From Isurus oxyrinchus (taxonomy: Eukaryota), in the NCBI GenBank assembly GCA_026770705.1, contig JANJGN010000052.1, positions 62,001 through 126,000 of the forward strand: a stretch of 64,000 nt of DNA, in the 5' to 3' direction. Positions 19,736-44,235 of this stretch are shown here, piece by piece (positions within the stretch are counted from its first letter, which is position 1; every line of letters begins with the position of its first letter). Below the pieces are notes generated by a model that saw nothing but the letters and a program-made list of their open reading frames with translations, made no database searches and was not told where the DNA came from. The position numbers were made by a program, and so were the translations under genes.

Positions 19736-19758
19736 AACAAATGTATCTCCACACTCAC

Positions 19759-20040
19759 ATTCCACAGTGATGGTTATGGACCCCTCCACTGCTCCATGTT
19801 CATTCTCTGCCACACACTGATAGTCTCCAGTGTCCCTGGATGTAACGTGAGGAATCACCAACCACAGCTCATTGTTGGAACTTGTTCTGTTCATTGGGAC
19901 ATTAAGATGTCGCCACGTCAGGTTAGAAGCTGGGAAGCTCTCGACAGAGCAGATTATCACTGCAGAATTCTCCTCAATTATATTGATTGATGAAGCGTTA
20001 ATCATATCAAGCGAAGTAAATGAGAGATCCTGTGGTGCAT
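19759..20040 (-). CDS. Module C, membrane-proximal C2-set Ig exon
   Basis: tttttag| acceptor and GAAT|gtgagt donor, 282 nt, phase 1-1. APQDLSF...VIICSVESFPASNLTW...DTGDYQCVAENEHG...ITVE. Confidence 0.9.
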
Positions 20041-20757: not shown

Positions 20758-20821
<64 letters not shown>

Positions 20822-20849
20822 AGTGATGTTGGAGTTTGCAGTAACTCAC

Positions 20850-21130
20850 GTTCCACAGTGATGGTTATGAACCCCTCCACTGCTCCATGTTCATTCTCTG
20901 CCACACACTGATAGTCTCCAGTGTCCCTGGATGTAACGTGAGGAAACACCAACCACAGCTCATTGTTGGAACTTGTTCTGTTCATTGGGACATTAAGATG
21001 TCGCCACGTCAGGTTAGAAGCTGGGAAGCTCTCGACAGAGCAGATTATCACTGCAGAATTCCCCTCAATTATATTGATCGATGAAGCGTTAATCATATCA
21101 AGAGAATTAATTGAGAGATTCTGGGTGCGT
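20850..21130 (-). pseudogene. Module C, middle C2-set exon with a 1-nt deletion
   Basis: 281 nt versus 282 in the two siblings; starts AC GCA CCC AGA instead of AT GCA CCA CAG and hits TGA after about 12 codons in the spliced frame. Splice sites are intact. Confidence 0.75.
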
Positions 21131-21948
21131 CTAAAAGAAATAAAGATTTTAATGTGAGCAAGCATAGTGCACAGCAAGACTCCATGCATCATCTCTCTGT
21201 ATCTGATGTTGGTATGCTTTTCCAGGTACCTTCCCTCATGAAAAATTACTGTCATATTTATAATGGACACTTCCTATGTAAACTGTCACACTGCAGTTGC
21301 TTCCTCCCACCAGTAGAGTTGCTAACCCTCTAGAATGAAAGAAACATCCTTTAACACTCTCAAGATGTCCCCAAGGGCTTGATAGGCAATGAATTGTATT
21401 TGATCGATGGAGCACTGAGGGCTAAATCTACATTTCTCTGTTCAGGAGGTTGCTCATCCAATTCAGGGTCTTGCTGATCTGGAGTTTACCTTCCTTCAGC
21501 ACAGAATGGGAGCTGATACCATGACTCCAGTGCAGAACTGAGAGAGGAGAGGGAGCTCACACTTGTGTGTGTACTTCTGCACGTGAGTTTGTATTTGTGT
21601 GTATGCGCGTGTCTNNNNNNNNNNNNNNNNNNNNNNNNNNNNNNNNNNNNNNNNNNNNNNNNNNNNNNNNNNNNNNNNNNNNNNNNNNNNNNNNNNNNNN
21701 NNNNNNNNNNNNNNNNNNNNNNNNNNNNNNNNNNNNNNNNNNNNNNNNNTGTGCTTGCGGGAGTGTGTGTGCATGTGTGTGTCTATGTGTGCGCATGAAT
21801 GTTTGTATGTGAGTTGAGTTTGTGTGTGTTTCTGTGTATGTGTTTGAACATATGTTTGTGTGTAAGCGTGCATGTTTGTGTCTACACATGAGTGTTTTTG
21901 CATGTGTGAGTGTGTGTGTGAGAGATGTTGAAGTCTGTGTACACTCAC

Positions 21949-22230
21949 ATTCCACAGTGATGGTGATGAATCCCTCCACTGCTCCATGTTCATTTTCTGC
22001 CACACACTGATAGTCTCCAGTGTCCCTGGATGTAACGTGAGGAATCACCAACCACAGCTCATTGTTGCAACTTGTTCTGTTCATTGGGACATTAAGATGT
22101 CGCCACGTCAGGTTAGAAGCTGGGAAGCTCTCGACAGAGCAGATTATCACTGCAGAATTCCCCTCAATTATATTGATCGATGAAGCATTAATCATTTCAA
22201 GAGAAGTAAATGTGAGATTCTGTGGAGCAT
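21949..22230 (-). CDS. Module C, first C2-set Ig exon
   Basis: ttcttag| acceptor and GAAT|gtgagt donor, 282 nt, phase 1-1; near-identical to 19759-20040. Confidence 0.88.
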
Positions 22231-22976
22231 CTAAGAACAAATCAAGTGTTTAATGTGAGCAAGCAGCGTGCACAGCAAGACTCCATGCATCATCTCTCTG
22301 TATCTGATGTCTGTATGCATTTCCAGATACCTTCCCTCCATATAACTTCCACTGTCAAATTTATAATGGGCACTGCCTATGTAAACAGTCAAACTACAGT
22401 TACATTCTCCCACCAGTAGAGGTGCTGTTCACCTAGAATGAAAGAAACTTTCACATCCTCAGGATTTTGCCAAGGGATTTACGGGAATGAATTGTATTTG
22501 ATCGATGGAGCACTGAGGGGTAAATCTACAATTCTCTGTTCAGGAGGTTGCTCATCCAGTTCAGGGTCTTGTTGATCTGGAGTTTACCTTCCTTCAACAC
22601 AGAATCGGAGCTGACACCGAGACTCCAGTGCAGCCCTGAGAGAGAAGAGGGACCTCACGCGTGTTTATGTGTATGTGTTTGTGTTTCTACATATGTGAGT
22701 ATGTTTGTGTGAGTATGCATGCATGTGTCTGTGTGTGCATGTGTGTATGTGTTTGCGCAAATGTGCGTGTGTCTTTGTGTATATTTCTGTGCATAAGTGA
22801 ATGTGTGTACATGTGTATGTGTAGTGTGAGTGTGTGTGTGTGAGTTGAGTGTGTGTATGTTTCTGTGTAGGTTTTTGCACGTGTATGACTGTGTGTAAAT
22901 GTGCATGTATGTGCCTACACATGAGTGTGTGTGTGTGTGTGTGTGTGTGTGTACATGTGTGCATGTGTGCATGTGG

Positions 22977-25395
22977 ATTGTCGCATCTTTATTATTAACG
23001 TTATTTAAAAATAGTGATCACACAAGCCTAGCTTCTAAGGAGATGAAACTGCAAACAATTTACAGTAAAGTGAAATGTACAGGAATAATCTATTTATTTT
23101 GAGTTGATGATATATAATTATACATGAGGCATGTTGCTAATTTCAAACATCATCTGAAATATGGCAGGTCTGACAGAGCAGCATTCCCTCAGTGTCCACC
23201 CTCTGACAGTGCAGCACTCCCTCAGCATTGACGCTTTGAGAGTGCAGCACTCCTTCAGTATTGACCCTCTGGAAGTGCAGCACTCCCTCAGTGCTAACAC
23301 TCCAACAGTGCAGCACTCCCTCAGTACTGACCCTCTGACAGTGCAGCACTCCCTAAGTACTGACCCTCTGACAGTTCAGCACTGCCTCAGTACTGACCCT
23401 TTGATAGAGCAGGGTTTCCCTCAGTACTGACCTCCTGACAGTGCAGCACTCCCTCAGTACTGACCCTCTGACAGTGCAGCACTCCCTCAATATTGACCCT
23501 CCAACAGTGCAGCACTCCCTCAGCACTCCCTCACTGGGGAGAGTCCATCTGGGTTTTGAGCTGAAACCTTGAGACGGTTTGAAAACCCCAACCTGCTGTC
23601 TTGGAGAGAGAGAGAGAGAGAGTGAGTGCGTGTGTGAGAAAGAGAGACAATGTGTGTGTGAGAGAGTGACAGTGCGTATGTGTGCGAGAGAGAAGGATAG
23701 AGAGAAAGAGAAAATGTGTGAGAGAGCAAAAGAGAGGTAGAGTGTGTACGCATGAGAGAGTGAGGTAGCTGAATTGTGTGAGAGAGTGTGTGTGAGAGAA
23801 AGGGAATGTCTGTGTTAGAGAGAGAGCTTATGTGTGAGAGAGAAAGAAAGAGAGAGAATCTGTGGGTGTTAGATAGTGTGTGTGTGAAAGAGAGAGTGTG
23901 TATGTGAGAGAGCGTGTGCGTGAGAGCGTGTGTGTGTGTGTGTTTGAGAGAGGGGGTGTATGTGTTTGAGAGAAGGAGTGTGCGAGAGAGGGTGTGTGTA
24001 TTTGAGAGGGAGTGTGTGTGTTTAAAAGAATGAACAAGNNNNNNNNNNNNNNNNNNNNNNNNNNNNNNNNNNNNNNNNNNNNNNNNNNNNNNNNNNNNNN
24101 NNNNNNNNNNNNNNNNNNNNNNNNNNNNNNNNNNNNNNNNNNNNNNNNNNNNNNNNNNNNNNNNNNNNNNNNNNNNNNNNNNNNNNNNNNNNNNNNNNNN
24201 NNNNNNNNNNNNNNNNNNNNNNNNNNNNNNNNNNNNNNNNNNNNNNNNNNNNNNNNNNTTTACAGTTTCACACGTTGCTAGGGACCACTTTTCCGCCTCT
24301 CTGTCAGACTGTGTGTATCTGACAGCAGGTCAGGCAGGAATAGTCCAGAATGCGATGTGGTTTTGTAGCATTGAAACAACGACATGAACTAAATGAGTGC
24401 TGCACCAAATAAAGACATGGAGTGACCACACCAAAAAACCACGTGACTTCCCCAGTTTCACATCTCCCTCAAACACAGAAAAACTGGGTTAACACTGACC
24501 CTCCTCCCAGAGCCAGTTCACCTCGTGTCCGATGCAGTCAGGAGAGGAAGATCATCTCTCCTCCGATCCTGCTAAACTGAACATTTCCAGAATTAGATCA
24601 GCTCCCTGAAGTGTCTCCAGTTAGACATTCATCTGACAGGATTGACTCTACAACCCTGGGGACTCATTCTCCTGTAAGTAAAACACTTGCTGCTCCTGTC
24701 AAATCTCTTCTGTATAGCATGGTCTCTGGATGTCCCAGAACACTTTACAGTTGAGTTCACCCTTTTTTCGAAGTGTGGTTACTGTTGTAATGTAGGAAAC
24801 GCAGCAGCCAATTAGCGCACAGCAAGCTCCCACAAACAGCAATGTGAGCATCTGTTTTTGGTGATGTTGGTTGAGGGATAAATATTGGTGCCAGGACACC
24901 GGGGAGATCTCCCCCCTGCTCTTCCTCCAAATAGTGGTTGTGGCATCTTTCACACCCGCCCGAGAGGGCAGACGGGGGACTCGATTTAGTGTCTAATATT
25001 GGACTAATCTCCAGGCGAGGTTGGCTGGATGGATTATTGACAAGGTCCATTCACCCTGTAAATGGTTTGAAATACCCGATCAAACATCGAGTTCTGTGTC
25101 TAAACCTTGTGTTGAAAAGACACCTTTCCAGCTCTTCACCTGCCATTAGCTTGTTGAGTCTTCACACGCTCCGTCTGTCTGTGACCAACCCCTCTTAGCT
25201 CATCCTTTCCTTGTCATACATCGAGCTGTTCATCCTGACGGGTTCCCTCCTTCCCAGTAACACTCCATCTCCGACATCAAACTAACTCCCAACACGTTGA
25301 TGAATTGTATGGATTCCAGCGTCAGTTGGTTCTGTCTGAGGCTGTTTCTCTGATCGGGGACCGAGCTGTTCTGAACGGACTTTGTGTTCAGCAGT
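22977..25395 (-). repeat. Right arm of the inverted segmental duplication (partner 6547-8773)
   Basis: Reverse complement of the left arm, interrupted by the gap at 24039-24258. Confidence 0.9.
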
Positions 25396-27265: not shown

Positions 27266-27304
27266 GCTTTTTGATGTCCTGTCCCCTCCCTTGTTGCCTT
27301 TCAG

Positions 27305-27594
27305 GAGTGACGTCAGAGGGATGGTCTATGAAGGCGCTGCCTCGGAGGGCCATCAGCAGCTCTTGTGTGGTTATTCCGTGTAGCTTTGACTTTCCTTCCC
27401 ACTCTTACACAGCACTGCACGGAGCTTGGTATAAATATTGGTATAGATGGAAATATACCATCACATACACCAAAGATCCCAATTATGCGATGGCCACATT
27501 CGTGGGACGAGCTAAAATAATCGGCGACTTGGAAGGGAAGAATTGTTCGGTGGGGATTGACAGTCTCAGAGCTGAAGACAGTGACGTGTATTAC
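27305..27594 (+). pseudogene. MAG/Siglec-like gene D, truncated V-set exon
   Basis: cctttcag| acceptor, phase 1. GVTSEGWSMK...SCVVIPCSFDFP...HGAWY...FVGRAKIIGDLEGKNCSV.IDSLRAEDSDVYY then switches to gag sequence and stops at 27604-27606. Confidence 0.82.
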
Positions 27595-27993
27595 ACCCAA
27601 TTCTAAATCTTTTCACCAATTAGTCGTCCTCATGAAGATGTATTTTCAGCTGAAGCCGTGGGTAATAATGCAGAGGTTTAAGTTTAACTCCAGAGTAAGG
27701 GCCCAGGGAGAGTCCATCGCAACCTATACAGTGAAGTGGAAGCAGGTGACTGAGCACTGGGACCTCGGAGACACACTCAATGACATGTTGCGGGGCCGAT
27801 TGGTTTGTGTTGTTCACCCCAATGCCATTCAGAGCCGTTTACTCGCAGAAGCCGACATCGATTTGAACCGCGCCATGGAAATAGCGCCAGGCATGGAAAG
27901 TGCTGGGAGAGACTGGAGGGATTTACAGGATGTACAACATGGCACCAGTCCTCAGCTGGGACAGGAACCAACCACCGGGCGTGAGGCTCAAAC

Positions 27994-28026
<33 letters not shown>

Positions 28027-28700
28027 CCGCCAAGCGAGAGACAGTCTCTGCCGCTCCAGAAACTAAAAGGCTTCGTGGGAGTATTTCAGCAGCAACTCCG
28101 AAGTTGGCCTGTTCTCGATGTGGGGGGGGTGAGCATGTACCGGACACCTGCAGGTTCAAGGGGGCAGAATGCCATCACTGCCACAAGAAAGGGGCGGGTA
28201 ATAAAGCAATGCAGGGTGAAATCGAGACAGCCCATCAGACAGTGCACCAACATGATGGAAGTGAATAATATCACAGAGTCTGAAGCTGCTGATACCGATG
28301 TCTATTCCCTGTCCAATGTCACAGTGGTAAAAACTGAACCTATAACCATCACAACCCAAGTGAATGGGCAGCCACTAGTAATGGGGCAGATACGGGAGCC
28401 TCAGACACAGTGGTGGAAGAGCCCACATTTAAACAGCTAAATGAAGGAACCCAGACGCTGAATTTAGAGCCAACAATGGATCAGCTGAAGACACACACTG
28501 GAGAATCCATACAGGGAAAGGACCTCATCCCAGTACCTGTGTCCTACAGGCAGCAGACAGCCCAGCTTCCAGTGATCATAGCGACAGGTGAGGGCCCTAG
28601 TCTTCTGGGCCGAGACTGGTTCCAGAAAACCAAGCTCAGCTGCTCTGAAATGTTTCACTGGAGGAGTTGCTGAGTTGCTGGGGGAATATGAGAGTGTATC
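27595..28700 (+). mobile_element. Degenerate Gypsy-type LTR retrotransposon gag-protease fragment
   Basis: QRFKFNSR...GESIATY...LNDMLRGRLVC, zinc knuckle CSRCGGGEH...C...CHHCHKKG, protease end GPSLLGRDW. Same family as 62700-64000. Confidence 0.85.
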
Positions 28701-28964: not shown

Positions 28965-29335
28965 GTGCAGAAGGAGGCCATTCAGCCCCTTGAGCCTGTT
29001 ACACAGGAACAGGAGGAGGCCATTCAGCCCCTTGAGCCTGTTACACAGGAACAGGAGGAGGCCATTCAGCCCCCTCAAGCCTGTTACACAGGAACAGGAA
29101 GAGGCCCATTCAGCACCCTCGAGACTGTTACACAGGAACAGGAAGAGGCCATTCAGCCCCCTCAAGACTGTTACACAGAAACAGGAGGAGGCCATTCTGC
29201 CACTTATGTCCATTACACAGGAACAAGAGGAGGCCATTCTGCCACTTATGTCCATTATACAGGAACAGGAGGAGGCCATTCAGCCACTGATGCCCGTTAC
29301 ACAGGAACAGGAGGAGGCCATTCAGCCCCTTGTAG
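28965..29335. repeat. ~39-bp minisatellite (ttacacaggaacaggaggaggccattcagcccctcgagcctg)
   Basis: About 9 tandem copies; an inverted copy with the same flank lies at 5874-6096. Confidence 0.9.
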
Positions 29336-29989
29336 GGTGTGGTGGTGTGTGTCAGCTTCACCTGCGACTTCTGAGCCATCTGAATCACTCCCAATCCCTG
29401 GGTTCTAGACCTTGGACTTATTCGGGGCTTGTCACAAAGTGCAGCAGACAACTGGTTTTGGTGCAAGACAAAAACTGAGTTTACTGAAGTCACAAATGAA
29501 CTTATAACATTAGGATGACACTGAGATTATACAGACTTACAAAGTACACTGAGTTAAGAATGGGGAACACACGGCATAACGAGGGAGAATCACGCTACTA
29601 ATGCCCTTACCCTTGTCCCACCCCCAAACCCTAACTAAATAGCACTAGGAGAGGTCAGGGGTCACGCTCACCAACCCAGGGTTCCTTGACAGTTGGAAAT
29701 TTTGAGAACCCTTCAAGAGATGGGGTGGGTTACAGGGGCTGGAGGAGGTTACAGAGATAGGGAGGGTTGTAGGGGCTGGAGGAGGTTACAGAGATAAGGA
29801 GTGTTGTAGGGGCTGGAGGAGGTTACAAATTGTAAATCAGTTCCCCCTCGAGGCCCCTTGTCCAAAATAAAAGCAACGCACACAATTTGTAAAATAGTAA
29901 GTGTAGCAATGAGAGGAGTAAGGGGTTAGGGGGCGTGCGCTTCACCTGATTTGCCGACATTAGAACCAGCCCCTATGTTTTTGCTATGT

Positions 29990-30207
29990 TGTGTTGCATC
30001 AATATGAACACATATTTGCACAAGGTGAAGGGCGTTGCGGAGGGACTGATAGTTCTCGGTGCCAGACAGTCAATGTCCCAGTGACCTTACTGCTGGTCCC
30101 AGGCCAGTGGGACAGGGAACATCGACACTGCAATATCCAGAAATGGGTGTGATACCACACAGCTACCCACCCGCGGCTGTCCCCTTCAAGTGTTTCAGGT
30201 ATAAGAG
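29990..30207 (+). promoter_or_regulatory. Proximal promoter of the hepcidin-like gene
   Basis: TATAAGAG at 30200-30207, 77 nt before the ATG. C/EBP-type TTGCACAA at 30016-30023, C/EBP-ATF-type TTGCATCA at 29994-30001, CAGAC at ~30063. Confidence 0.55.
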
Positions 30208-30276
30208 CAGGAAGCTCCTCTAGTTACAAACCAAAGCATCAAAGCAGAGCCAGAAGATCAGAAGAGACAGGCAGAG

Positions 30277-30369
30277 ATGGGAAGCTCCCGGATGAAATGG
30301 CGACTTGTCTTGTTCACTCTGACTTTGCTGCTCTCCCTGCAGCTGAGTCACTTCTTCTCCTTGTCGAGG
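30277..30369 (+). CDS. HAMP: Hepcidin-like precursor, exon 1 (signal peptide)
   Basis: MGSSRMKWRLVLFTLTLLLSLQLSHFFSLSR with AGG|gtaagc donor, 93 nt, phase 0, downstream of a TATA box. An alternative in-frame ATG is at 30292. Confidence 0.82.
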
Positions 30370-30569
30370 GTAAGCTAAGAGATGTCCCTCTGGGTGAGGT
30401 GTTTCTTGCACATGACTCTACGTCTACCACCCAGATAGACTGGTCACTTCCGCAGTTTGATATTATTATGTTCGTGCCTTTAATATTGTCGCCCTCTATG
30501 AATTTAACATCATTTCCTTATGTCGTTTCCCCTGAAATTCTCATTCTTGTTTTCAATCCCTCCTCAGCG

Positions 30570-31460
30570 ACTCCCTATCTCTGTAACCTCCTCCAGCCCG
30601 TACAACCCTCCCTATCTCTGTAACCTCCTCCAGCCCCTACACCCCTCCCTATCTCTGTAACCTCCACCAGCCCCTACAACCGTCCCTATCTCTGTAACCT
30701 CCTCCAGCCCCTACAACCCTCCCTATCTCTGTAACCTCCTCCAGCCCCTACAACTGTCCCTATCTCTGTTACCTCCTCCAGACCCTACAACACTCCCTAT
30801 CTCCGTAACCTCCTCCAGCCCCTACAACCCTCCCTATCACTGTAACCTCCTCCAGCCCCTATAAACCTCCCTATCTCTGTAACCTCCTCCAGCCCCTACA
30901 ACCCTACCTATCTCTGTAACCTCCCCCAGGCCCCACAACCCTCATGATCACTGTAACCTCCTCTAGACCCTACAACCCTCCCTATCTCTGTAACCTGCTC
31001 CAGACCCTACAACCCTCCCTATCTCTGTAACCTCCTCCAGACCCTACAACCCTCCCTATCTCTGTAACCTCCTCCAGGCCCCACGACCCTCAGAATGACT
31101 GTCACCTCCTCCAGCCCCTACAATGCTCATGAACTCTATAACGTCCTCTCCACACTATAACTCTCCCTATCTCTGTAACCTACTGTGGCCCCTACAACAG
31201 TATCTATTTTGGTAACCTCCTCCAGCCTCTACAACCCTCCCTACCTCTGTAACCTCCTCCAGCCCCCACAACCCCCCCATCTCTTTAACCTCCTACAGCC
31301 CCTACTCATCTCCCTATCTCTGTAACCTCATACAGCCCCTACAACCCTCCCTATCTCTGTAACCTCCTACAGCCTCTAGAACCCTCCCTATCTCTGTAAC
31401 CTCCTACAGCCTCTACAACCCTCCCTATCTCTGTAACCTCCTCCAGCCGGAACAACCCTA
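30570..31460. repeat. ~38-bp minisatellite (ctccagcccctacaaccctccctatctctgtaacctc)
   Basis: More than 20 tandem copies in hepcidin intron 1; inverted arrays at ~29735-29830 and ~51660-52110. Confidence 0.95.
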
Positions 31461-32278
31461 CCTAAATCTCTGGTCTGAGTCTCACTCCACGGAATTCAGT
31501 CCCATAACGTCGGTCAACACTCCGTGCTGAGGGAGTGCTGCACTGTCAGAGGGTCAGTAGTGTGGAAGTGTTGCACTATTGGAGGGACAGTACTGAGTGA
31601 GTGCTATACTGTCGGAGGTCAGTACTGAGGGAGTGCTGCTGTGTCGAAGGGTTAGTACTGAAATAGAGCTGCACTGACGGAGGGACAGTACTGAGGGAGC
31701 GCAGCACTATCGAAGGGTTAATACTAAGGGAGTGCTGCAGTGTCAAAGGGTTAGTACTGAGGGAGCGCTGCACTGACGGAGGGACAATACTGTGGGAGTG
31801 CAGCACTATCGAAGGGTTAGTACTGAGGGAGTGCTGCAGTGTCAAAGGGTTAGTACTGAGGGAGCACAACAATGTTGAATGAGACATTAAACCGAGTCCC
31901 CCGTCTGCCCTCTCGGGCGGGTGTGAAAGATCCCACAGCCACTATTTGGAGGAAGAGCAGGGGGAGTTCTCCCCGGTGTCCTGGGACCAATATTTATCCC
32001 TCAACCAACATCACCAAAAACAGATGATCTAGGCCATGATCACATTGCTATTTGTGGGATCTTGCTGTGCACAAATCAGCTGCCACATTTCCGACAGTGT
32101 GAGTGCACTTCAAAAACATCCTTCAGTGGCTGTGAAATGCTTTGGGATGTGGTGAAAGGCGTTAGAGAAATGCAAGTCTGTCCTCCTCCCCCTCTCTCTC
32201 CTGTACCTCTCTCTCTCTCTCTCCCTCTCCCTCAATCCTCCTCTCACTTTCTCCCTGATAAATTCTTTCTTTTTGCAG

Positions 32279-32335
32279 GTTGACACTGCTTTAGGTTCTT
32301 CGACGATTGAGAAATCTGTGGATTCCCCGGACACG
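32279..32335 (+). CDS. HAMP: Hepcidin-like precursor, exon 2 (pro-region)
   Basis: Long polypyrimidine ttctttctttttgcag| acceptor and ACG|gtaggt donor, 57 nt, phase 0-0. Encodes VDTALGSSTIEKSVDSPDT. Confidence 0.78.
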
Positions 32336-34639
32336 GTAGGTGGAAATTCATTCCTTATTTTAAGGTTCCTCCCTGCTCGTTTCTTCCACAGAAAGTTTTC
32401 TGATTTCAAGCTGATTTCAGTGGCAGTCTGTCTCGGTTATACTCAGGAGGCATGTTTGAAATCGAGCCCCCCCCACCCTTTTTTTGCAAAGCTGGGAAGA
32501 GGCAATTCCAAGGAAGTGAACATATCCCCACAGGAATTTTAAATGTAACCCATGCCGGGAATAGTGAGAGGGAGACTGATCCAGCCTGGGAGTGGGTTAA
32601 AGAGAGGCTGGGAGTCGAGAGTCGGAGAGAGGGATGGAATGGGGGAGGGAGGGATTGGAAGAGAGAGACAGAGAGTGGGACGGGGAGGGGTGAAAGGGAA
32701 AGAACATAGGTGGGAGAGAGTGACAGAGGGAGAAATTAAAGAAGAGATGCAGAGTGAGGGAAAGTGAAAAGGGAAGAGAGATTGTCCAAGAGAGAGAAAT
32801 TAACAGGAAAGGGAGAGTTACAGAGTGAGCGAAAGTTACAAAAATAGTGTGAGAGAGAGGGAGAGATACAAAGTGGGAGAAGGAGACAGGGGAGAGAGAG
32901 GGAGAGAGACAGGAAAAGGGAGAGAGGAGAGAAAGATTGGGAGAGAGGGCAATTGAGAGGAAGAGTAGGAGAGAGAGAGACAGGGAGAGGAGGAGTGGAA
33001 GAGAGGAAGAGAGAGAGAGATATGGAGCAGGAGAACACCTCCTCCGGTCCCGATGTTCCTCCAAAATCTCTGACATTACTGCATCTCCCGGGTCCCCCTG
33101 ATTCCCATCGCTCCACCATTGGTGGCCGTGCCTTCAGCGGCCTGGGGCCCTGAGCTCCGGAATACCCTCCCTTAACCTCTCTGCCTCTCTCTCTCTCTCT
33201 CTCTCTCCTTTAAGACGCTCCTTAAAAACTGACATCTTTGACCAAGCTTTGGTCACCTATCCCTAATATCTCCATATGTGACTCAGTGTTAGACTTCTCT
33301 CTGATTTACGCTCCGGTAATGTGGGCTGGGACATTTTGCAATGTCCGAGGCGCTGTGTAAATGCAAGTTGTGAGTGTTATGTGGAAGGGAGACCCCAGGC
33401 GGCAGTCAGTGCCAGAGACTGGAGTCATTGTGCGCAGACCGTATCTAATCTCTCCGAATGCACAATCGGTTTGACTGTCAGCCAAAGCACTTTTGATATT
33501 TGATCCTTCTAACTGTTTATAACCAGGCCTACATCATACACCGAGAGGCTGGTTAATCAACAGACACCTTAGAGGATCGAGTGAAAGACAAAGAGGACTT
33601 GCATTTCTCTATAAAAACAAAGAAAACTGCGGATGCTGGAAATCCAAAACAAAAACAGAATTACCTGAAAAAACTCAGCAGGTCTGGCAGCATTGGCGGA
33701 GAAGAAAAGAGTTGACGTTTCGAGTCCTCAGAAGGGTCATGAGGACTCGAAACGTCAACTCTTGCATTTCTCTAGCGCCTTCCAACACATCAGGACGTCC
33801 CAAACTGTTTCGCAGACAATCCAGTGCTTTTTTTCTTTCATGTGAGGTCACTGATGTACTGTGGGAAAAGAATCAGCCATTGGCGCACTGTAAGATCCCA
33901 CAGACAGCAGCATGATAATGACCAGCGCACTCCCAGTACTTGCACTGCAAGTGTCAGTTCAGGGTGTCTGCTCGATTCTCTGCAACTCTCAGCTCTGAGT
34001 TAAAAGGACCACCAGGCGTAATTGAGAAATTACCGAGCTGTCGGAGGGTCAGTACCAGCGGGGGGGCAGGACAGTCGGAGGGTCAGTACTGAGGGGGTGC
34101 TGCATTGTCAGACGGTCAGTACTGAGGGAGTGCTGCACAGTCGGAGGGTCAGTACTGAGGGGGTGCTGCACTGTTGAAGGCGCTGTCTTTCAGATGAGAT
34201 GTTAAACTGAGACAACATCTGCCCTCTCAGATGGATGTAGAGGATTCCATGGCCACAATTTAAATGAAGTGTTTCAGGAGTTGGGTGTATGTGTGGAGGG
34301 GGTGGTGGGGGGTGGATGGGATGCAGTTATGTCTGCTTTCCTGGGGCAAACATTTATCCCTCAACTGACATTGGTAAAAAACTGAAAATCGGGGCCATTA
34401 TCACATTTCTGTTTGTGGGATCTTGCTGTGCGTGAATTGCCTGCTGCGTTTCCTACATTACAGCGGTGAGCTCACTTCAGAAAAAGTCCTTCCTTCAGCT
34501 GTGGAACACTTTGGGCCATCCTGAGGAGGGGAAAGGCGCTATAGAAATGCGCCATCCTCCTTCCAATGACGTGCCTGATTGAAATGATGCCTTCTTTCTT
34601 TCCGGAATGTTCTCACCTATTGTCTTCCTGCTTTTCCAG

Positions 34640-34756
34640 GGCTCCTTGCTGCAGCGCCAGAAGAGAATGGGCAGACAGCAGCTCTGCAGATTCTGCTGTA
34701 ACTGCTGTAATTGGAGAGGACCAAATGAGACTTGTGGTCTCTGCTGTAGATATTAG
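34640..34756 (+). CDS. HAMP: Hepcidin-like precursor, exon 3 (furin site and mature peptide)
   Basis: cttttccag| acceptor, phase 0. GSLLQRQKR|MGRQQLCRFCCNCCNWRGPNETCGLCCRY* has an R-x-K-R site and the C-xx-CC-x-CC-(x)n-C-G-x-CC eight-cysteine pattern. Confidence 0.93.
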   Translation, partial: GSLLQRQKRMGRQQLCRFCCNCCNWRGPNETCGLCCRY

Positions 34757-35084
34757 ACCCTGGCCTCATTCACGCAAGGTCATCCTGCACCATGCCACAG
34801 CCTCTCCCCTCCTTATCTACTGCTTAGCAATCTATTTCACACAGGCCCTGTTCATTAATTCCAACTGAAACTTTACCTGCGTTTTACAGCAGGGAATGAA
34901 GCCATTTGGCCCATCTGCTCCATGCTGGTGTTTCTGCTCCACACGAGTCTCCGCCCATCCCTTCTCCATCTCACCCCATCACCATATCCTTCTATTCATT
35001 TCTGCCTCGTGTGTTTATCCAGCTTCCCCTTAAATACATCGACACTATTCACCTCACGTAACTGTGTTTGTGCCTGTCTTTATG

Positions 35085-35116
<32 letters not shown>

Positions 35117-35599
35117 ACTGTCAATATGTGTGTGTCAATGTGAATGTGTGTGATTGTGTCAGCGTGTGTGTGTGTATGTGTGACTGTCAGTGCGTGTCAA
35201 TGTGAATGTGTGTGATTGTGTCAGCGTGTGTGTGTGTGTGTGTGTGTGTGACTGTGTCAGTGTGTGTCAATGTGAATGAGTGAGTGTGTCAGTGTGTCTG
35301 TGTGGGTGTGTGTGACTGTGTCAGTGTGTGTCAATGTGAATGAGTGAGTGTGTCAGTGTGTCTGTGTGGGTGTGGGTGTGTGAGTGTGCAAGTGAATGTG
35401 TGAGGAATCTTATGACTAAGTCATTTGAATGGATGTTACTGGGGTTAATGATAGTTAAAATTCAGAGAGATGTGAAGCGGGCACCTGATTTTGCTGCTTT
35501 ATGCTCCCGGGCACAGATTGACCCCGACAATGTGTTCATGATTCACCATCATCTTGTCGGGACTTTAATTGTAAAGATTATGATTTGTGAAAAAAAATG

Positions 35600-35605
35600 A
35601 ATAAA
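35600..35605 (+). terminator. Candidate polyadenylation signal for the hepcidin-like gene
   Basis: First AATAAA I found downstream of the stop codon. Confidence 0.35.
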
Positions 35606-37244
35606 CAACTTTTGTCTTCACAAAGTGTCTGGCTTGGTATTTCAGGCTACTTGTCTCTCCCTCACCCTCCCCCCCCACCATGCCCCCCACACCAGGGAAC
35701 AATTGTCCCCCCTTCCTCTGAAGTTCTGGGTAAAGATCAGCTGTATTCAATGCAAGCTGTTCCGACATCGAGAACGTTGTTACAAATATCTCACAAAGGG
35801 CACATGCCATGATAGCCCACTTTCAACAGATTTTACCAGTTGACCAGGTTGAAAACCTTTTCATAAACCACAACGTAGGTGTTCAATTCTTGCTGCTGTT
35901 TGCTTAATGTTCTCATAACTGCTATAACCTCTCTAGTTCCACTACATAACAACACCAACATAAATAAACAGAAGCAGGAGTAGGCCTTTTGGCCTCCCAA
36001 GCCAGCTTGTCCATTCAATTTGAACCTGGCTCCTGCTGAAAGTTATTTAAGTTGAAGCGATAAAGCCATCAGGTGCAGGGATTAAAATGTAAGCAAAGGA
36101 AAAATAATACTTAGACATGAGATTTAAAATCAGTTTCTGTGAAGAATCATACTGAGGCCATTGCACTGGATTCCTTCTTTCCAGAGTGAAGGGTTTAAAA
36201 CTAGGAGTCACATTCAGCAGCTGCGTTGTCTTCTCTAGTTGACTATTTGGAGGTTGCCTATAGATGTGAATCAGCAGGTCAGCAGCTTTGGGGAGTGAGT
36301 GAAGGTCCCTTTTATTTACAGGATCTGCCACAGGGTGTGCAGGAATATTCCTGCTGAATTCTCCATCCTTGCATTCATGAAGGGTTTGAAACTGGAAGTC
36401 ATATTCAGCAGCTGCAATGGCCTCTGTAGCCAACTGTCTGGAGGTTGCCTGTACATGTGGACTCAGCAGGTCAACAGCTTTGTAGGGCGGGGGGGGGTGC
36501 ACGGGTAGTAAAGGTCCCTTTACTTTAAAGGCTCTGCCAGTGCAACACTTGATGATCCTGGGTCAAAATCATGTATCACCCTCCCCAACAGCACTGTGGA
36601 TGTGCCCGATGGAGGTTCCTTGGCTTCGACAAGCAGCCTACCAGCTCTGCTCTCAATTCCTCTTCACACTTGCTTCCTTCCTCCTCTGGTCTTTACTTTG
36701 TTATAGTGTTAGTGTCCGCTCTGCCTTTTTTGTTGCTTTCCCAATTCTTCCCACCAACTCTCTCTGGCTTGATCCTTCTCTGTGCTCATCTCATTGGTTT
36801 GGGTTTCTATCCGTTCATTGACCTGGTGCAATCTGAAACTGGTGCAATCAGGTAGGGGTGGGGGGGTTGGCGCTGGCCGTGGGTGGTGATACACGGCTAC
36901 CTTTTTACCAAAATTCTTTCACGGGATGTGGACAGCGTTTGTTACCTGTTCCTGACTGAGCCCTGGAGAAGGGGGTGCTGAGCTGCCTTTTCGAAGTGCT
37001 GCAGTTCACCTGGTTTGACTGGGCTGTGGCGGGTTTTGATATAACTCAGTGGCTTGCTCGGCCATTTCAGGGGCCAGTTAAGAGTCAACCACATTGCTGT
37101 GGGTCAGGAGTCACACGTAGGCCAGAATGGGTAAGGACGGCAGGTTTCCTTCCCCAAAGGGCATTAGTGACCCAGATGGGTTTTTGCAACAATTGGCCTT
37201 AGTTTCATGGTCACCATTACTGAGACTAGCTTCGCATTCCAGAT

Positions 37245-39200
37245 GTCACATCCAGTCGTGGACAATTAAACAACTCACTGGAGGAGGAGGCTCCACAAAT
37301 ATCCCCATCCTCAATGATGGAGGAGCCCAGCACATCGGTGCAAAAGACAAGACTGAAGCATGCGCAACAATCTTCAGCCAGAAGTGCTGAGTGGGTGATC
37401 CATCTCGGCCTCCTCCGGAGGTCCCCAGCATCACAGATGCCAATCTTTAGCCAATTCGATTAATTCCACGTGATATCAAGAAAGGGCTGAAGGCACTGGA
37501 TATTGTAAATGCTCCAGGCCCTGAAAATATTCTGGCAATAGTACTGAAGACTTGTGCTCCAGAACTTGCTGCGCCCCTAGCCAAGCTTTTCTGGAATTTT
37601 CTAGTACAGCTGCAACACTGGCAACTACCCGGCTATGGGGTACGTCCTGTACACAAAAAGCAGGACAAATCCAACCCAGCCAATTACCCAGCAGTCTATT
37701 CTTGATCATTACTAAAGTGATTGAAGGGGTCATCAACAGCGCTTGCAAGCAGCACCTGCTTAGCAAGAATCTGCTCACTGACGCTCAGTTTGTGTTCCAC
37801 CAGGATCATTCAGCTCCTGGCCTCATTACAGCCTTGGTTCAAACATGCATAAATGAGCTGAACTCCAGAGGTGAGAGTGACTGTCCTTGACATCAAGGCA
37901 GCATTTGACTGAGTGTGGCAAATCAAGGAGCCCGAGCAAAACTGGAGTCAATGGGAATCGGGGGAAAACTCTCCGCTGCTTGGAGTCATACCCAGCACAA
38001 AGGACGATGGTTGTGATTATTGGGGGTCAATCATCTCAGTTCCAGGACATCACTGCAGGAGTTACTCAGGGTAGTGTCCTAGGCTCAAACATCTTCAACT
38101 GCTTCATCAATGACCTTCCTTCCATCATAAGGTCAGAAGTGGGGATGTTTGCTGATGTTTGCACAATGTTCAGCACCATTCACAGCTTCTCAGATACTGA
38201 AGCAAGTTATGTCCATTTGCAGCAAGACCTGGACAACATCCAGGCTTGGGCTGACAGGTGACAAGTAACATTCATGCCACACAAGTACCAGGCAATGACC
38301 AGCTCCAACAAGAGAGAATCTAATTGAAGGTGCAGAAAATTTGGATTTATGTTCAAGAGCCAGCCAGGACCAGCAGCTAGGGCGCCAAAGCGTACACATC
38401 CTTACGTGAAAACTTAAAAACCTGTACTAAGGGCTCAGTTGGAAATTTGCAATGAGGAAATGGGAGACACACACACAAGGACACTGGGTGACTCAATCAA
38501 GAAATGGGGAAGGTTATTTCACACCGTTCGATGGCCTTGAACCACATCCAGTCAGCCCCCGGAAACCTTTTGTATTGAACAAACATAGATTCTTTGCTGT
38601 CTCAAAAGGACAATAGCCAGTCTCTGCCCTGTAATTACTGTACAAGAACACAATTATCAGCCCACCGGAGGATCATTGTGCTGTGGCCTTTGTCTAACTA
38701 ATACCATTACCTTGTAACTGAGAGTAAAAATATATAAACTGTGCTCATTTGAACCTTGGTGGAGAAGCGCCTGGACTGCCCAGCGTTTGCTCCCCACATG
38801 CGTAATAAAGGAACCACTTGAATATTGCATCTGGAGTCCGAGTGTTGAAATTTTGTACCAGAATATCCCACAGACCATTCATAACCATCGCCCCTTGACA
38901 TTCAATGGCATTACCATCAATGAATCCCCCAATATCAACATCCTGGGAGTTACCATTGAGCAGAAACTGAACTGGACCAGCCATATAAACACTATGGCTG
39001 CAAGAGCAGGTCAGAGGCTGGGAACCCTGCAGACAGTAACTCACCTCCTGACTCCCCAAAGCCTGTCCACCATCTACAACGCACAAGTCAGGAGTGTGAT
39101 GGAATACTCTCCACATGCCTGGATGAGCACAGCTCCAACAACACTCAAGAAGCTCGACACCATCCAGGACAAAGCAGCCCGATTGATTGGCTCCCCTTCC
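37245..39200 (+). mobile_element. Degraded CR1/L2-superfamily LINE RT region
   Basis: GVTQGSVLGSNIFNCFINDL, MFAD, QDLDNIQAWADR, YNAQVRSVMEYSP...LDTIQDKAARL; interrupted by a solo LTR. Confidence 0.85.
38325..38881 (+). mobile_element. Solo LTR inserted in the LINE
   Basis: TGAA...TTCA termini, taat/taac target duplication, internal AATAAA at ~38804. The LINE sequence gagagaatctaa|ccatcgcc resumes on the far side. Confidence 0.78.
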
Positions 39201-40694
39201 ACAGAGCTAGATAGATTCTTGATTAACAAGGGGGTGAAAGGTCATTGGGGGTAGGCAGGAATGTGAGGTTGAGGTGACAATCAGATCAGCCATGATCTTA
39301 CTGAATGGCAGAGCAGGTTCGAGGGACTGAGTGACCTACTCCTGATCCTAACTCAGATATCCAGATGTTCTCAAAGGCAATTGGGGATGGGCAACAAATA
39401 CTGGCCTAGCCAGCGACACCAACATCCCTGAAATGAATAAGAAAAAAATGTATCAATCAATTAAATTTATTGATTAATCGAACTGAAATTCCTCCAGCTG
39501 CCGTGGTGGGATTTGAACCCGTGCCTTCAAAGCATTCACCTGGGCCTCTGGATCACTGGCCTAGTGCCATTCCCATTGTGCGACTGTCTGCTATCATCAT
39601 GGCTCTTTCACATCGATGTGGAAGTCCTGATAACAGAAGCATTGGACGAGGTACAGTAAGGTGACAAATCAGGAGCTCCATTGCTCAATATGAACGGATA
39701 ATAAAGATAAATGAACATAAACCTTCCAGTCGCTAATTAGGGAGTCACTGTGGAGCCCATGAGTCCCTCGCAGCGCTATTGCAACCTTCTGGATCCCCAG
39801 TAGGGGACTCGGGGTGCAGCTGTGTCTTCCTCATCATTTGGAAAAGCCGGAATTGTTCGGGTGCCCCTTCAAACAGGCCGAAGATGCAGTGGGTGATGTC
39901 TCCCACAGGCCCTGGGAGACCTCCCCTGCCAATTTGTTTTGTAGCTTATTCTTCAACTGCGACTTTGGATCAGCTTGAAAAAGGGTGAGGCTGAGGCAAT
40001 ACCACCAGGTAAGCGTCTATCCCCTCACACGTCACCCCCCGACCCCCGTAACCGTCACAGTCCCTCCCATCGTGCTGGAGGAGCATAATGTGCACATTCC
40101 CCTCCTTCCAATCAGTCTCCTCCCTTCCTCTCTAATCCTTGATCTTATTGTGTTCGGGGTTGACATCCCAGTCCTCCTCCCTAGACTGTCTGATGTTGAC
40201 ATCCCAATGCCCCATGTAGACCTGACCTCTCTCCAACTAGAGGCCCATTGTACTGTGACTTACAGAGACCACCGGCCCCCCTCGATTCCCACCCCCACCC
40301 CTACCCTCTATATTACCTGCTCCCCACTGACAGGCTGCAGATGCCTCCCCTGACTGGGATTGTGCCACCTGCGGCCTAGTATCAAGCCACCCACCCCCAG
40401 GATGGACGTGTGTGAGGGACTGACCACGTCCTGCACACCATGCTGGGCACCACCAACCCAGGACTGCCAGGCTGTCCCCACCACACTGGACTGGGACTAG
40501 AATAGGCATGCCAAGCACAGCTCTCTAAATCGTGGCGCAGACCCACAGCACTCGCAATGTTTTGTGGCCCGAATCCTTGCTGAGGAACTGCCCAGCACTA
40601 AAATCAAAACAACTGCAGATGCTGGAAATCCAAAACAGAAACAGAAACAGAAATACCTGGAAAAACTCAGCAGGTCTGGCAGCATCGGCAGAGA

Positions 40695-41480
40695 AGTACT
40701 GAGGGAGTGCGGCACTGTCGGAGGGTATGAACTGAGGGAGAGCTGCACTGTCGGAGGGCTTGAACTGAGGAAGTGCTGCACTGTCGGATGGTTTGAACTG
40801 AGGGAGTGCTGCACTGTCGGAGGGTCTGAACTGAGGGAGTGCTGCACTGTCGCAGGGTCTGAACTGAGGGAGAGCTGCACTGTCGGAGGGTATGAACTGA
40901 GGGAGTGCTGCACTGTCGGAGGGTATGAACTGAGGGAGAGCTGCACTGTCGGAGGGCTTGAACTGAGGAAGTGCTGCACTGTCGGATGGTTTGAACTGAG
41001 GGAGTGCTGCACTGTCGCAGGGTCTGAACTGAAGGAGTGCTGCACTGTCGGAGGGTCTGAACTGAGGGAGTGCTGCACTGTCGGAGGGTCTGAAATGAGG
41101 GAGTGCTGCACTGTCAGAGGGTCTGAACTGAGAAAGTGCTGCACTGTCAGAGGGTCTGAACTGAGAGAGTGCTGCACTGTCAGAGGGTCTGAACTGAGGG
41201 AGTGCTGCACTGTCGGAGGGTTTGAACTGAGGGAGTGCTGCATTGTTGGAGGGTTTGAACTGAGGGAGTGCTGCACTGTCGGATGGTTTGAACTGAGAGA
41301 GTGCTGCACTGTCGGAGGTTCTGAACTGAGGGAGTGCTGCACTGTCGGAGGGTTTGAACTGAGGGAGTGCTGCACAGTCGGAGGGTCTGAACTGAGGGAG
41401 TGCTGCACTGTCGGAGGGTTTGAACTGAGGGAGTTCTGCATTGTCGGAGGGTCTGATCTGAGGGAGTGCTGCACTGTCTA
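40695..41480. repeat. 33-bp minisatellite array (gaactgagg variant)
   Basis: About 24 copies; source of three long spurious ORFs. Confidence 0.95.
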
Positions 41481-41820
41481 AAGAACATTGTACAAATTGC
41501 ACAAAATTTCATCTGATGCCTGTGTCTCATGCTAACATGAAGTTCATGCACACAACAGGAATATTTCTCGCTGTTTCTCTGCAGCAAGACAGCTTTGGTA
41601 TCACACCACCCACTGGCAAGAGTGTGCAGTTACAATGTGACATGTTTACATTGGAAATTTCTATTATAAAGATGGACAGAGGAATTCATCTGATTGGAAA
41701 ACGTGACAACAGGAAGCTATGTCTTTGAGCCAAGTATTTTGCAGCAAAACAAGAATTTTAATCTTTAAATATCTACAGAACAGGCTGAGCATTTTAATCA
41801 CTTGAGTTAATCAATGTAAT

Positions 41821-42209: not shown

Positions 42210-42349
42210 TCAAACAGTCTGTCGACTTCCTTTCACTGTTTGTCTCTCCCAGACACAGACTCCAGCGATAGTGATAACCACAGCCACAAGGAATATCACA
42301 GCTCGTATTCCCAGGATCAGGATCACGTGCAGAATCTCTCCTCCACTGT
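42210..42349 (-). CDS. Siglec-like gene B terminal exon: TM with Arg and short tyrosine-free tail (activating type)
   Basis: tttctttctgtgtgttctctag| acceptor, phase 1. (D)SGGEILHVILILGIRAVIFLVAVVITIAGVCVWERQTVKGSRQTV*, Arg codon 42303-42305. This frame is not in the ORF track. Confidence 0.85.
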
Positions 42350-43463
42350 CTAGAGAACACACAGAAAGAAATCATCACTGACTCTCCGCTTTCAATCTCT
42401 CACTCTGGCTGAACAATCAAGCTTCATATCACTGCAACATTTGCTGTAATATTGACCCATCCACTGGGATTCAATGTGGAATGAATGTTTTCATTGTAAA
42501 CACTCTAAGAGTGGACAATCGGAACTTTCCCCTTAGCGTGGAACATTGGTGAGAATGGATCATTGTGCTGTTGGACTCCCTGTCCAATGTTTCTCTCTAT
42601 TGCTGTGTACAGGATTGTGCTGTAGAAAATTCTGGAAACGTTTAGTGCCGGGTGAAAATCCATCTCGGACGTGTGTGCAAATCGGGCAGGATCGGGATGG
42701 ACTCCCCCACGGACATACACCCCCCGCTTAATAAACAGTTCCAATCTTTACCCAGAGAGAGGGGAGAATATGGAACTCGCTCCCACAGGGAATGGTTGAG
42801 GTGAATAGTAGGAAATTAGGAAGTGAAATTGCTTGAAAAGCTTGGAGATGCAAGGGTTAAGTGTTACCGTGCTACCACTGGTGGGAGAGTGTAACTACAG
42901 CGTGACGTTTACATAGGCAATCCCCATTATGAACATGGACATCATGTGAAAAATGGGCACTGGAAAGCTGAGAACTTGATGTAAGCTTTTCAGCAACAGG
43001 AATTCCCTTCCTAAACCTCTCCACTTCCCTCTTACTCTCAGATACTCAAACAAAATTTCACACAAAATCACGTAAGGAGGAATTGGGACTGGTGACTGGT
43101 CAAAGAGTTAGATTTCAGGAAGGTTCTTAAAGTAGGATAGAGAGTTGGAGAGGCAGAGAGTATCTGTGAGTATCTCTGTGCATCTGAGTGTCTGTAATAG
43201 ACTTTGCAATTTCCATATTCTTCCATAAATATGAAAGGGAACACAAATCCCAGAATCCAGGTCAACTCTCCGGTGCAGCACTGAGGGAGGTCAGGTAATC
43301 CACAGGGCAGTATGTGATAGTGTGTTTGTTTGTGAGTGTGTCTTTGTGTGTGCTCATAGATGTGGGATTGTGTGTCTGCAGGTGTCTATTTAAGGCTGGA
43401 TATTTATGTGTGTTTTTGTAGTGTTTCAATCTGAGAGAGATGTTGAAGTTTATCTTAACTAAC

Positions 43464-43615
43464 GTTCCACAGTGATGGTTATGAACCCCTCCACTGCTCC
43501 ATGTTCATTCTCTGAGCACACTGATAGTCTCCAGTGTCCCTGGATGTAACGTGAGGAATCACCAACCACAGCTCATTGTTGGAACTTGTTCTGTTCATTG
43601 TGATATTCAGATGTC
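43464..43615 (-). pseudogene. Broken C2-set exon remnant in gene B
   Basis: Only the 3' half (HLNITMNRTSSNNELWLVIPHVTSRDTGDYQC) matches the module C exons. The 5' half and acceptor are missing and there is a 1-nt deletion after the Cys codon. Confidence 0.8.
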
Positions 43616-43938
43616 AGGACCGGACTCAACAAGACAGATTGCAGGTTTACCAACAGAAAGTGAAAAACAATTTATATTTAAAGGGAAGAGAGTGCTGGTT
43701 AATCAGCAAGTGGTCTCTGATTGGAGGAGGTGTTGCCATGGAAAATAATGTGTGTGAGATGTAAAGTTTAGACAGCTTGTCCCTTCATTCAGCAACAATC
43801 AAATAAAGATCAGTTAACTTCTATCGACTGTGAAGCACTTTGAGAGGTCTGAGAATGTGGATACTGAGAACAGGCTGCACTGTCAGAGGGTCAGCGCTGA
43901 GGGAGCGCTGATGTAGAATGAAAGGTGTCTGTACTTAC

Positions 43939-44235
43939 CTTGCACAGTTAGTACGAGGGTCCGCTCCGATGCAACAGATGGATATCTCACTCTGCAGCTG
44001 AGAGTGTGTCTGTGGTGTTTGAGTGATGGGATCAGGGTCAGAACAGAAGTATAGGTCAGAGTGACACCATGCTGAGTTACAGTGTTTGAGACTGATCCAC
44101 GTACGTCAGTGGGAGTGTCCCAGGTTAAGACAGGTGCTGCTGTTCCATTGCACGTTGTGTTGAAGGTGCAGCTTACATCCACAGGCTTTCCTGCAATAAT
44201 TTCAGCAGGGAATATCGTGGGTTTATCTGTGAAAT
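43939..44235 (-). CDS. Gene B, domain-2 C2-set Ig exon
   Basis: 297 nt, phase 1-1, canonical splice sites; differs from the gene A exon at about 4 residues. Confidence 0.9.

Follow-up and report, generated by a model that had tools for sequence, protein, structure and literature searches.

A 64,000-nucleotide stretch of Isurus oxyrinchus DNA (contig JANJGN010000052.1; we refer to the whole of this stretch as the window) contains what is almost certainly a real gene of the hepcidin family. Vertebrates use hepcidin as their master iron hormone, and the peptide is antimicrobial as well. We find it likely that the gene is an intact, diverged duplicate, and that its product is a defence-type or otherwise neofunctionalised peptide, not the hormone that acts on ferroportin. 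The signal peptide and propeptide are close to those of a basking-shark hepcidin, but most residues of the mature peptide, other than its cysteines, are different. A transcript with the mature peptide typical of other sharks is present in the same sample as the spliced RNA described below.

A three-exon gene of the hepcidin family

The coordinates of the gene, and of all other features, are listed in Table 1. Each of the four exon-intron borders has the expected GT or AG dinucleotide, both junctions are in phase 0, and a pyrimidine tract with CAG precedes both exon 2 and exon 3. The three exons encode peptides of 31 (MGSSRMKWRLVLFTLTLLLSLQLSHFFSLSR), 19 (VDTALGSSTIEKSVDSPDT) and 38 residues (GSLLQRQKRMGRQQLCRFCCNCCNWRGPNETCGLCCRY), so that the precursor has 88 residues (31 + 19 + 38). 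In translation, the exon 1 peptide has a basic start, MGSSRMKWR, followed by a hydrophobic core. An earlier reading, made from the letters of the window alone (the sequence-only reading), had proposed the TATA box, the three exons with their borders and phase, the RQKR site, eight cysteines and a length of 88 residues. It was correct at every coordinate. It had also held that no part of the gene appears among the mechanically listed open reading frames (ORFs). This is so for exons 1 and 3, which fall in ORFs of 33 and 49 residues, under the usual cut-off. It is not so for exon 2, which lies in frame within an ORF of 89 residues (32273-32542).

That the gene would prove to be a hepcidin in a profile search, as that reading expected, was borne out with exon 3 alone. 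This peptide matched Pfam Hepcidin (PF06446) with a score of 31.2 bits (E 2.7e-7; profile positions 24-52 of 53), where the gathering cutoff is 27 bits. The mature peptide contains the cysteine pattern C-x2-CC-x-CC-xn-C-x2-CC (CRFCCNCCNWRGPNETCGLCC). With the gap set to between 3 and 9 residues, C-x2-CC-x-CC-x(3-9)-C-x2-CC, the pattern occurs once in the six frames of the window, at exon 3, and in 0 of 300 first-order Markov resamples of the window. The eight cysteines align with those of three shark hepcidins (P0002, P0003 and P0004, introduced below) and with those of Protein Data Bank (PDB) entry 1S6W, a 21-residue fish hepcidin, from bass. In the alignment of the window with the three shark proteins (A1), the eight cysteines, the RxxR motif, M60, N74 and G83 are invariant. 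The RQKR of the window stands opposite REKR and RQRR.

Other searches with exon 3 were less informative. Among PDB sequences, the sole hepcidin match was the 21-residue chain 1s6w_A (E 0.36); a thionin was listed at E 6.3, and no human hepcidin chain appeared at E <= 10. There were 0 matches at E <= 0.001 among 1.84 billion representatives, which says little for a query of 38 residues. Similarly, no candidate in a word-indexed protein collection had three 5-residue words in common with the exon 3 frame, again a short query. Within the limits of the search, the encoded peptide was not recovered from a collection of 5.8 billion proteins. The best match in the ESM Atlas (0.76) was a plant cluster and is uninformative, the query being short. 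An AlphaFold2 model of exon 3, from a four-row alignment, was too poor (mean predicted local distance difference test score 58.9, predicted template modelling score 0.28) to be informative on the beta-hairpin with four disulfides, and contained helices.

Related proteins were found from the other end of the gene. We searched with the ORF around exon 1, scoring only the part that bears the exon, and matched isoforms X3 (P0001) and X2 (P0002) of basking-shark (Cetorhinus maximus) LOC144671611. With P0002 as the query, the catshark proteins P0003 and P0004 were recovered, together with isoform X1 (P0005), making five proteins among 12 candidates. P0002 has 88 residues and is assigned to Pfam Hepcidin; its NCBI name is ‘uncharacterized protein’. 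P0003 (88 residues) and P0004 (84 residues), from Scyliorhinus canicula, are named ‘hepcidin-2-like’ and match PF06446. Shark hepcidins are, then, already annotated in public databases, and the chondrichthyan origin suspected for the gene agrees with its nearest database proteins being those of basking shark and catshark. In tblastn searches, P0001, P0002 and P0005 match exon 2 at 32276-32335 (to 32338 for P0005), and the breaks in the P0002 matches coincide with the exon borders of the window.

The BMP-responsive element (bone morphogenetic protein), STAT and E-box motifs are the iron and inflammation elements of mammalian HAMP promoters. In 800 base pairs (bp) of promoter (29480-30280) we found no BMP-responsive, STAT or E-box consensus, which is weak evidence as the motifs are mammalian. 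The same interval has no GGCGCC, TTCNNNGAA or CACGTG, and no NF-kB, HNF4 or AP-1 consensus. One C/EBP-like and three GATA-like matches carry no weight. Rfam gave 0 matches over 29000-38000. Neither tblastn with the three exon peptides nor blastn with the exon flanks revealed a second hepcidin in the 64-kb window.

Spliced RNA carrying the mature-peptide exon

A search of sequencing runs with 34600-35060 returned four small runs, X1-X4, from one sample of one organism (A). They contain between 0.49 and 0.77 of the exact sampled words of this interval, with X1 at 0.77. Contigs of runs X1, X2, X5 and X6 were then compared with the window over 30150-35650. Run X5 is from another study with the same organism label, and X6 is from a second organism (B). 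Note that X1 and X2 come from one sample and hence are not independent of each other. Note also that contig depth is a poor measure of abundance.

The two junctions predicted from sequence, 30369-32279 and 32335-34640, are both exact in contigs of X1 and X2. The first joint was present in 10 contigs of X1 and 2 of X2, the second in 9 of X1 and 5 of X2, and both have GT..AG borders. Two records in X2 end in twelve unmatched A after 35624, which is 19 nucleotides (nt) past the end of AATAAA, and high contig depth extends to 35650. Since they contain spliced joints and a poly(A) tail, the runs labelled ‘RNA?’ contain RNA. In X1, depth is 1.5e5-6.8e5 in exon bins, compared with about 650-1,400 in unique intron bins. 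At the 5' end it climbs from 21,699 at 30214 (about 2e4 across 30207-30214) to 357,644 at 30290, from which we infer a transcription start some 25-30 nt past the TATA box. Judged by contig depth, the transcript is abundant. No exon 3 difference is found among the best-supported differences between the contigs and the window. A transcript carrying exactly the mature-peptide exon of the window is expressed.

Some observations weigh against the window as the source of this RNA. Exon cover and joints are both absent from X5. All exon 1 contigs, 23 in X1 and 5 in X2, have A at 30290, where the window has G. The A encodes Gln5, the state of other sharks, and the G encodes Arg5. Furthermore, the mismatch between the window and the listed intron contigs ranges from 2 of 360 to 7 of 280 letters (0.6-2.5%). 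The source of the RNA may therefore be a different allele or a sister copy that is nearly identical. In the extreme, the locus in the window would be silent, or nearly so, and the abundant RNA would be made by near-identical sister copies elsewhere. We think this unlikely, if worth keeping in mind. The TATA box, ATG, four splice sites, open frame and AATAAA are all intact, and the agreement across exon 3 and the word content of X1 speak for the window sequence itself. In addition, the change at 30290, a CpG transition, could be an allelic one, and the individual that gave the RNA need not be the one that was assembled.

The contigs contain further coding variants. A minority of RNA contigs carry Trp8Leu, at 30299, and one high-depth contig per run carries Thr50Met, at 32334. 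Gln5, Leu8 and Met50 are all states found in hepcidins of other sharks. A larger change affects the mature peptide. One X1 contig tracks exon 3 to 34669 (...RQKRM) and then, by hand translation, reads S-H-L-S-I-C-M-Y-C-C. A contig of X2 matches the window to 34669 and again from 34753; the 83 places in between are skipped. Hence, the sample also contains a transcript that shares the pro part and the 3' untranslated region (UTR) of the window but encodes a mature peptide of the canonical type.

These variants bear on the reading that the hepcidin ‘copies’ were produced in assembly, as haplotigs or as mis-joined repeats, from one or two real genes, which would make any expansion an artefact. The window does have four runs of N and dense repeats. 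However, at least three coding variants are present in RNA (Thr/Met at 32334, Trp/Leu at 30299 and the mature peptide after 34669). A single gene does not account for them: two or more genes are needed, or at minimum two alleles and a paralogue, and an origin of the copies in assembly is improbable.

Two kinds of contig stand apart. One 338-nt contig of X6 covers the promoter and exon 1 and reaches into the intron; it carries no joints and departs from the window at 10 letters and in 2 gaps. Its appearance is that of genomic DNA, either from a relative or from another copy. In X1, the joints 32334>33526 and 33678>34637, both GT..AG and each in one contig, define a minor cryptic exon in the intron 2 repeat. 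The exon may reflect a contig that is chimeric across an abundant repeat.

A diverged mature peptide

Identity between the window and P0002 is 28/31 in the signal peptide, against residues 1-31 of P0002, 16/19 in exon 2, against residues 32-50, and 7/9 in the pro part of exon 3. In the mature peptide it is 13/29, or 5/21 when cysteines are set aside. For P0002 and P0003, the signal peptides share 22/31 residues and the exon 2 peptides 10/19, and the mature peptides share 26/29 (18/21 without cysteines). The canonical mature peptide thus appears, from these comparisons, to be under strong constraint between distant sharks. The mature peptide of the window is 13/29 identical to either canonical shark peptide. 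Near-identity of the signal and pro parts, together with divergence of the mature part, therefore indicates a recent duplicate in which the mature peptide was rewritten on a fixed cysteine frame.

The mature peptide begins MGRQQLC in the window, compared with MSHLS[IV]C in the canonical shark peptides. Only the Met, and a residue of the Leu/Ile/Val type before the cysteine, correspond. The 8-residue loop is NWRGPNET, compared with NKKGTKKT in P0002 and NRKGSKKT in P0003, and gains an N-E-T (N-x-T) sequon. Relative to P0002, the number of Lys and Arg residues in the mature peptide falls from 5 to 4, one Glu is gained and a His is lost. The long loop was considered as an oddity of the window copy; this was rejected, since a loop of 8 residues is common to P0002 and P0003.

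In other respects P0002 is much like the window gene, with a length of 88 residues, a layout in three parts, eight cysteines, a convertase site, Met at the mature start and the 8-residue loop. The differences are MSHLSVC in place of MGRQQLC and the letters of the loop. P0003 matches the window in its length and long loop but keeps MSHLSIC, and the catshark signal peptide is identical to that of the window at 19/31 positions. P0004 differs in having a loop of 4 residues. Within the catshark, the pair P0003 and P0004 repeats the pattern of the window, with signal peptides identical at 31/31 positions and mature peptides at 17/25. Diverged side copies of hepcidin seem to arise repeatedly in sharks. 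The gene is thus not itself the shark HAMP; it is a diverged paralogue that lacks the SHLS-type N-terminus conserved in sharks and teleosts.

A proposed role in defence

In sea bass, as described in the available text of PMC5665920, Hamp1 (QSHLSLC...) lowers ferroportin. Hamp2 (HSSPGGC...) does not, and is regarded there as antimicrobial. Because the SHLS-type segment is lost, and by analogy with this pair, we lean towards a defence-type or otherwise neofunctionalised peptide, rather than an iron hormone, as the product of the window copy.

The proposal is as follows. The gene is TATA-driven, and its transcript is spliced from three exons and has a poly(A) tail about 870 nt past the stop codon. 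Exon 1 encodes the signal peptide, exon 2 and the start of exon 3 the propeptide, and RQKR is a furin-type site. Cleavage after RQKR would release a 29-residue hairpin with four disulfides and a predicted net charge of about +3. The gene would have arisen recently by duplication of the canonical shark hepcidin, with signal and pro parts left almost unchanged and nearly all non-cysteine residues of the mature peptide replaced. In the course of this, MSHLS[IV]C, the presumed counterpart of the teleost Hamp1 segment QSHLSLC that is tied to ferroportin regulation, would have become MGRQQLC. The lysine-rich loop would have become NWRGPNET, with its N-x-T sequon. The product would then be a secreted peptide of the defence type, or one otherwise neofunctionalised, and the hormone would be made by a canonical copy at some other place in the genome.

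Not all observations favour this proposal. Leu at -1 and Phe at +2 of the first cysteine are kept, and so some residual ferroportin binding is possible. Very high apparent expression would fit a hormone as well. Both points speak for a working iron-regulatory hepcidin that kept ferroportin binding despite its altered N-terminus, and the scaffold, convertase site and loop length are indeed as in canonical shark hepcidins. Such a hormone is nevertheless very improbable here. Basking shark and catshark agree in the SHLS segment, which is replaced in the window, and only 5/21 non-cysteine residues are in common. A transcript that starts SHLSIC coexists in the same sample, and regulation of ferroportin in sea bass is confined to the QSHLSLC-type peptide (PMC5665920). 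We retain a defence-type or neofunctionalised peptide as the preferred reading.

The Siglec neighbourhood

The gene was expected to lie in a Siglec cluster, and V-set and C2-set exons do occur on both sides of it. The upstream Siglec-type gene scores 47.9 bits with Pfam V-set, 36.6 with Ig_CD22 and 33.8 with C2-set_2. In PDB searches, the downstream V-set exon at 44881-45348 matched Siglec-5 best (E 2.2e-13), with YFFRIE aligned to YFFRVE at the arginine, ahead of MAG (1.6e-11) and CD22 (2.2e-5). Across the neighbouring Siglecs, the closest solved relatives were Siglec-5, Siglec-8 and CD33, followed at a short distance by MAG and sialoadhesin. Four V-set exons stand in a row downstream. The middle two are near-identical and each has the same flanking antisense ORF, which fits a recent tandem duplication of a 2.3-kb unit.

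The Siglec-like V-set exon nearest to the 5' side of the gene matched sialoadhesin (E 1.1e-10) and MAG (E 1.7e-9) in the PDB. The alignment ends ...yytq against ...ynfr, so that Gln stands at the position of the sialic-acid-binding Arg of sialoadhesin, and the ORF stops one residue on. Its Pfam V-set score, 21.5 bits, is under the cutoff. The ORF runs into retroelement-like ORFs (27557-28440), and is possibly an exon relic broken by insertion. Further upstream, the first of three tandem Ig exons has contactins as its best PDB matches; MAG (5lf5, E 4.8e-13) is closest among Siglecs. The third of these exons has a run of N inside it (21615-21749), and the set is either an exon triplication or an assembly repeat.

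A table in PMC12847941 gives the mouse gene order as Cd22-Mag-Hamp2-Hamp-Usf2-Lsr. The sequence-only reading had inferred an ancient linkage of HAMP and Siglecs, HAMP lying beside MAG and CD22 in mammals. Given the mouse order, a linkage that predates the split between cartilaginous and bony vertebrates is plausible. The neighbours may or may not include orthologues of MAG and CD22; their best solved relatives are the Siglecs named above. Among 20 long ORFs scanned with Pfam there was no USF2-like domain, although short exons would escape such a scan. We found no statement of hepcidin-Siglec linkage or synteny in the open-access literature.

The window also contains homologues of the terminal exons of the basking-shark isoforms. 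In tblastn, residues 51-87 of P0001 matched the reverse-transcriptase fragment 3' of the gene at 21/24 (87.5%) and 13/14 (92.9%) positions. The overlapping ORF at 37887-38261 scores 24.9 bits with Pfam RVT_1, under the cutoff. The same search method placed other homologues of the isoform X3 and X1 terminal exons at 3189-3356, 53774-53953 and 54634-54708, next to Siglec V exons. All of these are antisense to the upstream side of the V exons. Such matches give a hint that splicing may read through from hepcidin into the repeats nearby. Since homologues of its terminal exons lie in the window, the basking-shark hepcidin gene is apparently in the same kind of neighbourhood.

Repeats and other features

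The stretches between the Siglec features look like retroelement debris and repeats. Units of a 37-bp minisatellite flank the promoter and exon 1, and ORF translations suggest more of them near 51749-52030. Arrays of a 33-bp unit yield long spurious ORFs in several frames and belong to a dispersed family, either like a short interspersed element (SINE) or a satellite. The element that carries the inverted repeat in intron 2 reaches a very high contig depth in each of the four runs compared, the DNA-like run included, and has no Rfam match. The hairpin is probably part of an abundant mobile element. Pfam scans of 10 further long ORFs gave only a weak hint of a retroviral protease, at 63533-63817.

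Table 1. Features of the window, with positions counted from its first letter
Feature	Position	Strand	Remarks
TATA box (TATAAG)	30200-30205	+	77 nt 5' of the ATG at 30277
Exon 1, coding part	30277-30369	+	93 nt, 31 codons; signal peptide; donor GTAAGC at 30370
Intron 1	30370-32278	+	1909 nt, mostly repeats (Tandem Repeats Finder, TRF); joint in contigs GT..AG
Exon 2	32279-32335	+	57 nt, 19 codons of propeptide; donor GTAGGT
Intron 2	32336-34639	+	2304 nt; GA-rich low complexity and SINE-like 33-bp repeats; joint GT..AG
Cryptic exon, minor, in intron 2 repeat	33527-33681	+	155 nt, frame-shifting; low depth
Exon 3, coding part	34640-34756	+	117 nt, 38 codons and TAG; end of propeptide, mature peptide
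RQKR convertase site	34655-34666	+	encoded in exon 3
Mature peptide, 29 codons	34667-34753	+	directly after RQKR; eight Cys
3' UTR	34757-35624	+	about 868 nt; AATAAA, and poly(A) site near 35624
TG-rich microsatellite in 3' UTR	35088-35388	+	TRF
AATAAA	35600-35605	+	first such signal 3' of the stop
Upstream Siglec-type gene	1922-3155	-	V-set exon 2685-3155, C2-set exon 1922-2314
Three near-identical tandem Ig exons (I-set/Ig_3)	19541-20050, 20614-21270, 21557-22240	-	Pfam on the first; the others by translation
Siglec-like V-set exon	27271-27606	+	2.7 kb 5' of the hepcidin gene
Downstream Siglec-type gene(s)	42210-53740	-	tail to tail with hepcidin; 42210 end provisional
C2-set exon	43883-44182	-	Pfam C2-set_2
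V-set exons	44881-45348, 53255-53740	-	Pfam V-set and Ig_CD22
V-set exons	47185-47655, 49491-49961	-	near-identical translations only
Reverse-transcriptase fragment	37804-37909	+	homologue of basking-shark isoform X3 last exon; 3 kb past the hepcidin stop
37-bp minisatellite in intron 1, 24 copies	30571-31464		TRF
37-bp minisatellite, upstream, 3 copies	29716-29827		orientation opposite to the intron 1 array
33-bp unit arrays (CTGAGGGAGTGCTGCACTGTCGGAGGGTCAGTA-like)	1275-1869, 16967-17775, 31527-31865, 34038-34174, 40497-41587
Perfect 24-nt inverted repeat, 9-nt loop	33707-33763		intron 2, inside a repeat element
42/87-bp tandem repeat, about 8 copies	29000-29331		about 1 kb 5' of the promoter; long spurious ORFs
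N runs (135-220 letters)	8774-8942, 12710-12874, 21615-21749, 24039-24258		within TG/CA-rich low complexity

Discussion

Hepcidin has been detected in nurse-shark plasma by proteomics, and an ortholog is missing from the annotated whale-shark protein set, according to the available text of PMC9207270. This absence, and the name ‘uncharacterized protein’ given to P0002, agree with the earlier suggestion that annotation pipelines under-call such genes; three-exon micro-genes of the hepcidin type are under-annotated. In the text available, PMC6795676 mentions hepcidins only as fish antimicrobial peptides in general, and hepcidin is present in PMC3832898 only in the reference list. We found no description of a shark hepcidin gene family in the open-access literature. 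With shark hepcidins already in databases, the value of the window is incremental: it adds an intact copy, exact support for both junctions and Siglec flanks on both sides.

Hepcidin stands beside Siglecs in a cartilaginous fish as well as in mouse, and the neighbourhood is plausibly older than the split between their lineages. More tentatively, a cassette of Siglec plus hepcidin may have been amplified together many times in this lineage of sharks, giving a large and very highly expressed family in which the N-terminus is rewritten and the long loop possibly N-glycosylated. If this were true, the family could form a class of secreted defence peptides peculiar to sharks, or it could act as a second hormone on some target besides ferroportin. 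The hepcidin expansion would be physically tied to receptors that sense sialic acid, and the HAMP-Siglec linkage would descend from the ancestor of jawed vertebrates.

Mammalian HAMP encodes its prepropeptide in three exons. In mouse, as in the window, Siglec genes adjoin hepcidin (PMC12847941, in the table already cited). The window differs from mammalian HAMP in its N-terminus, and the human chains are missing from its PDB matches up to E 10. It differs from the Usf2-Hamp-Mag-Cd22 block in that its Siglecs are an expanded set of the shark type. The fish peptide of 1S6W has the identical core CRFCCNCC and also the block CG-CCR, but the loop of the window peptide is 4 residues longer.

A split of the two hepcidin roles after duplication is known mainly from teleosts. 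By analogy, a similar split may have arisen independently in sharks, at the locus in the window. The available text of PMC5665920 describes sea bass Hamp2 in terms that would apply here: an extra copy, with the scaffold kept and the QSHLSLC-type N-terminus lost. The difference lies in ancestry. Judging by its signal and pro parts, which are near those of the canonical basking-shark gene, the window copy would have arisen independently of the teleost Hamp2 type.

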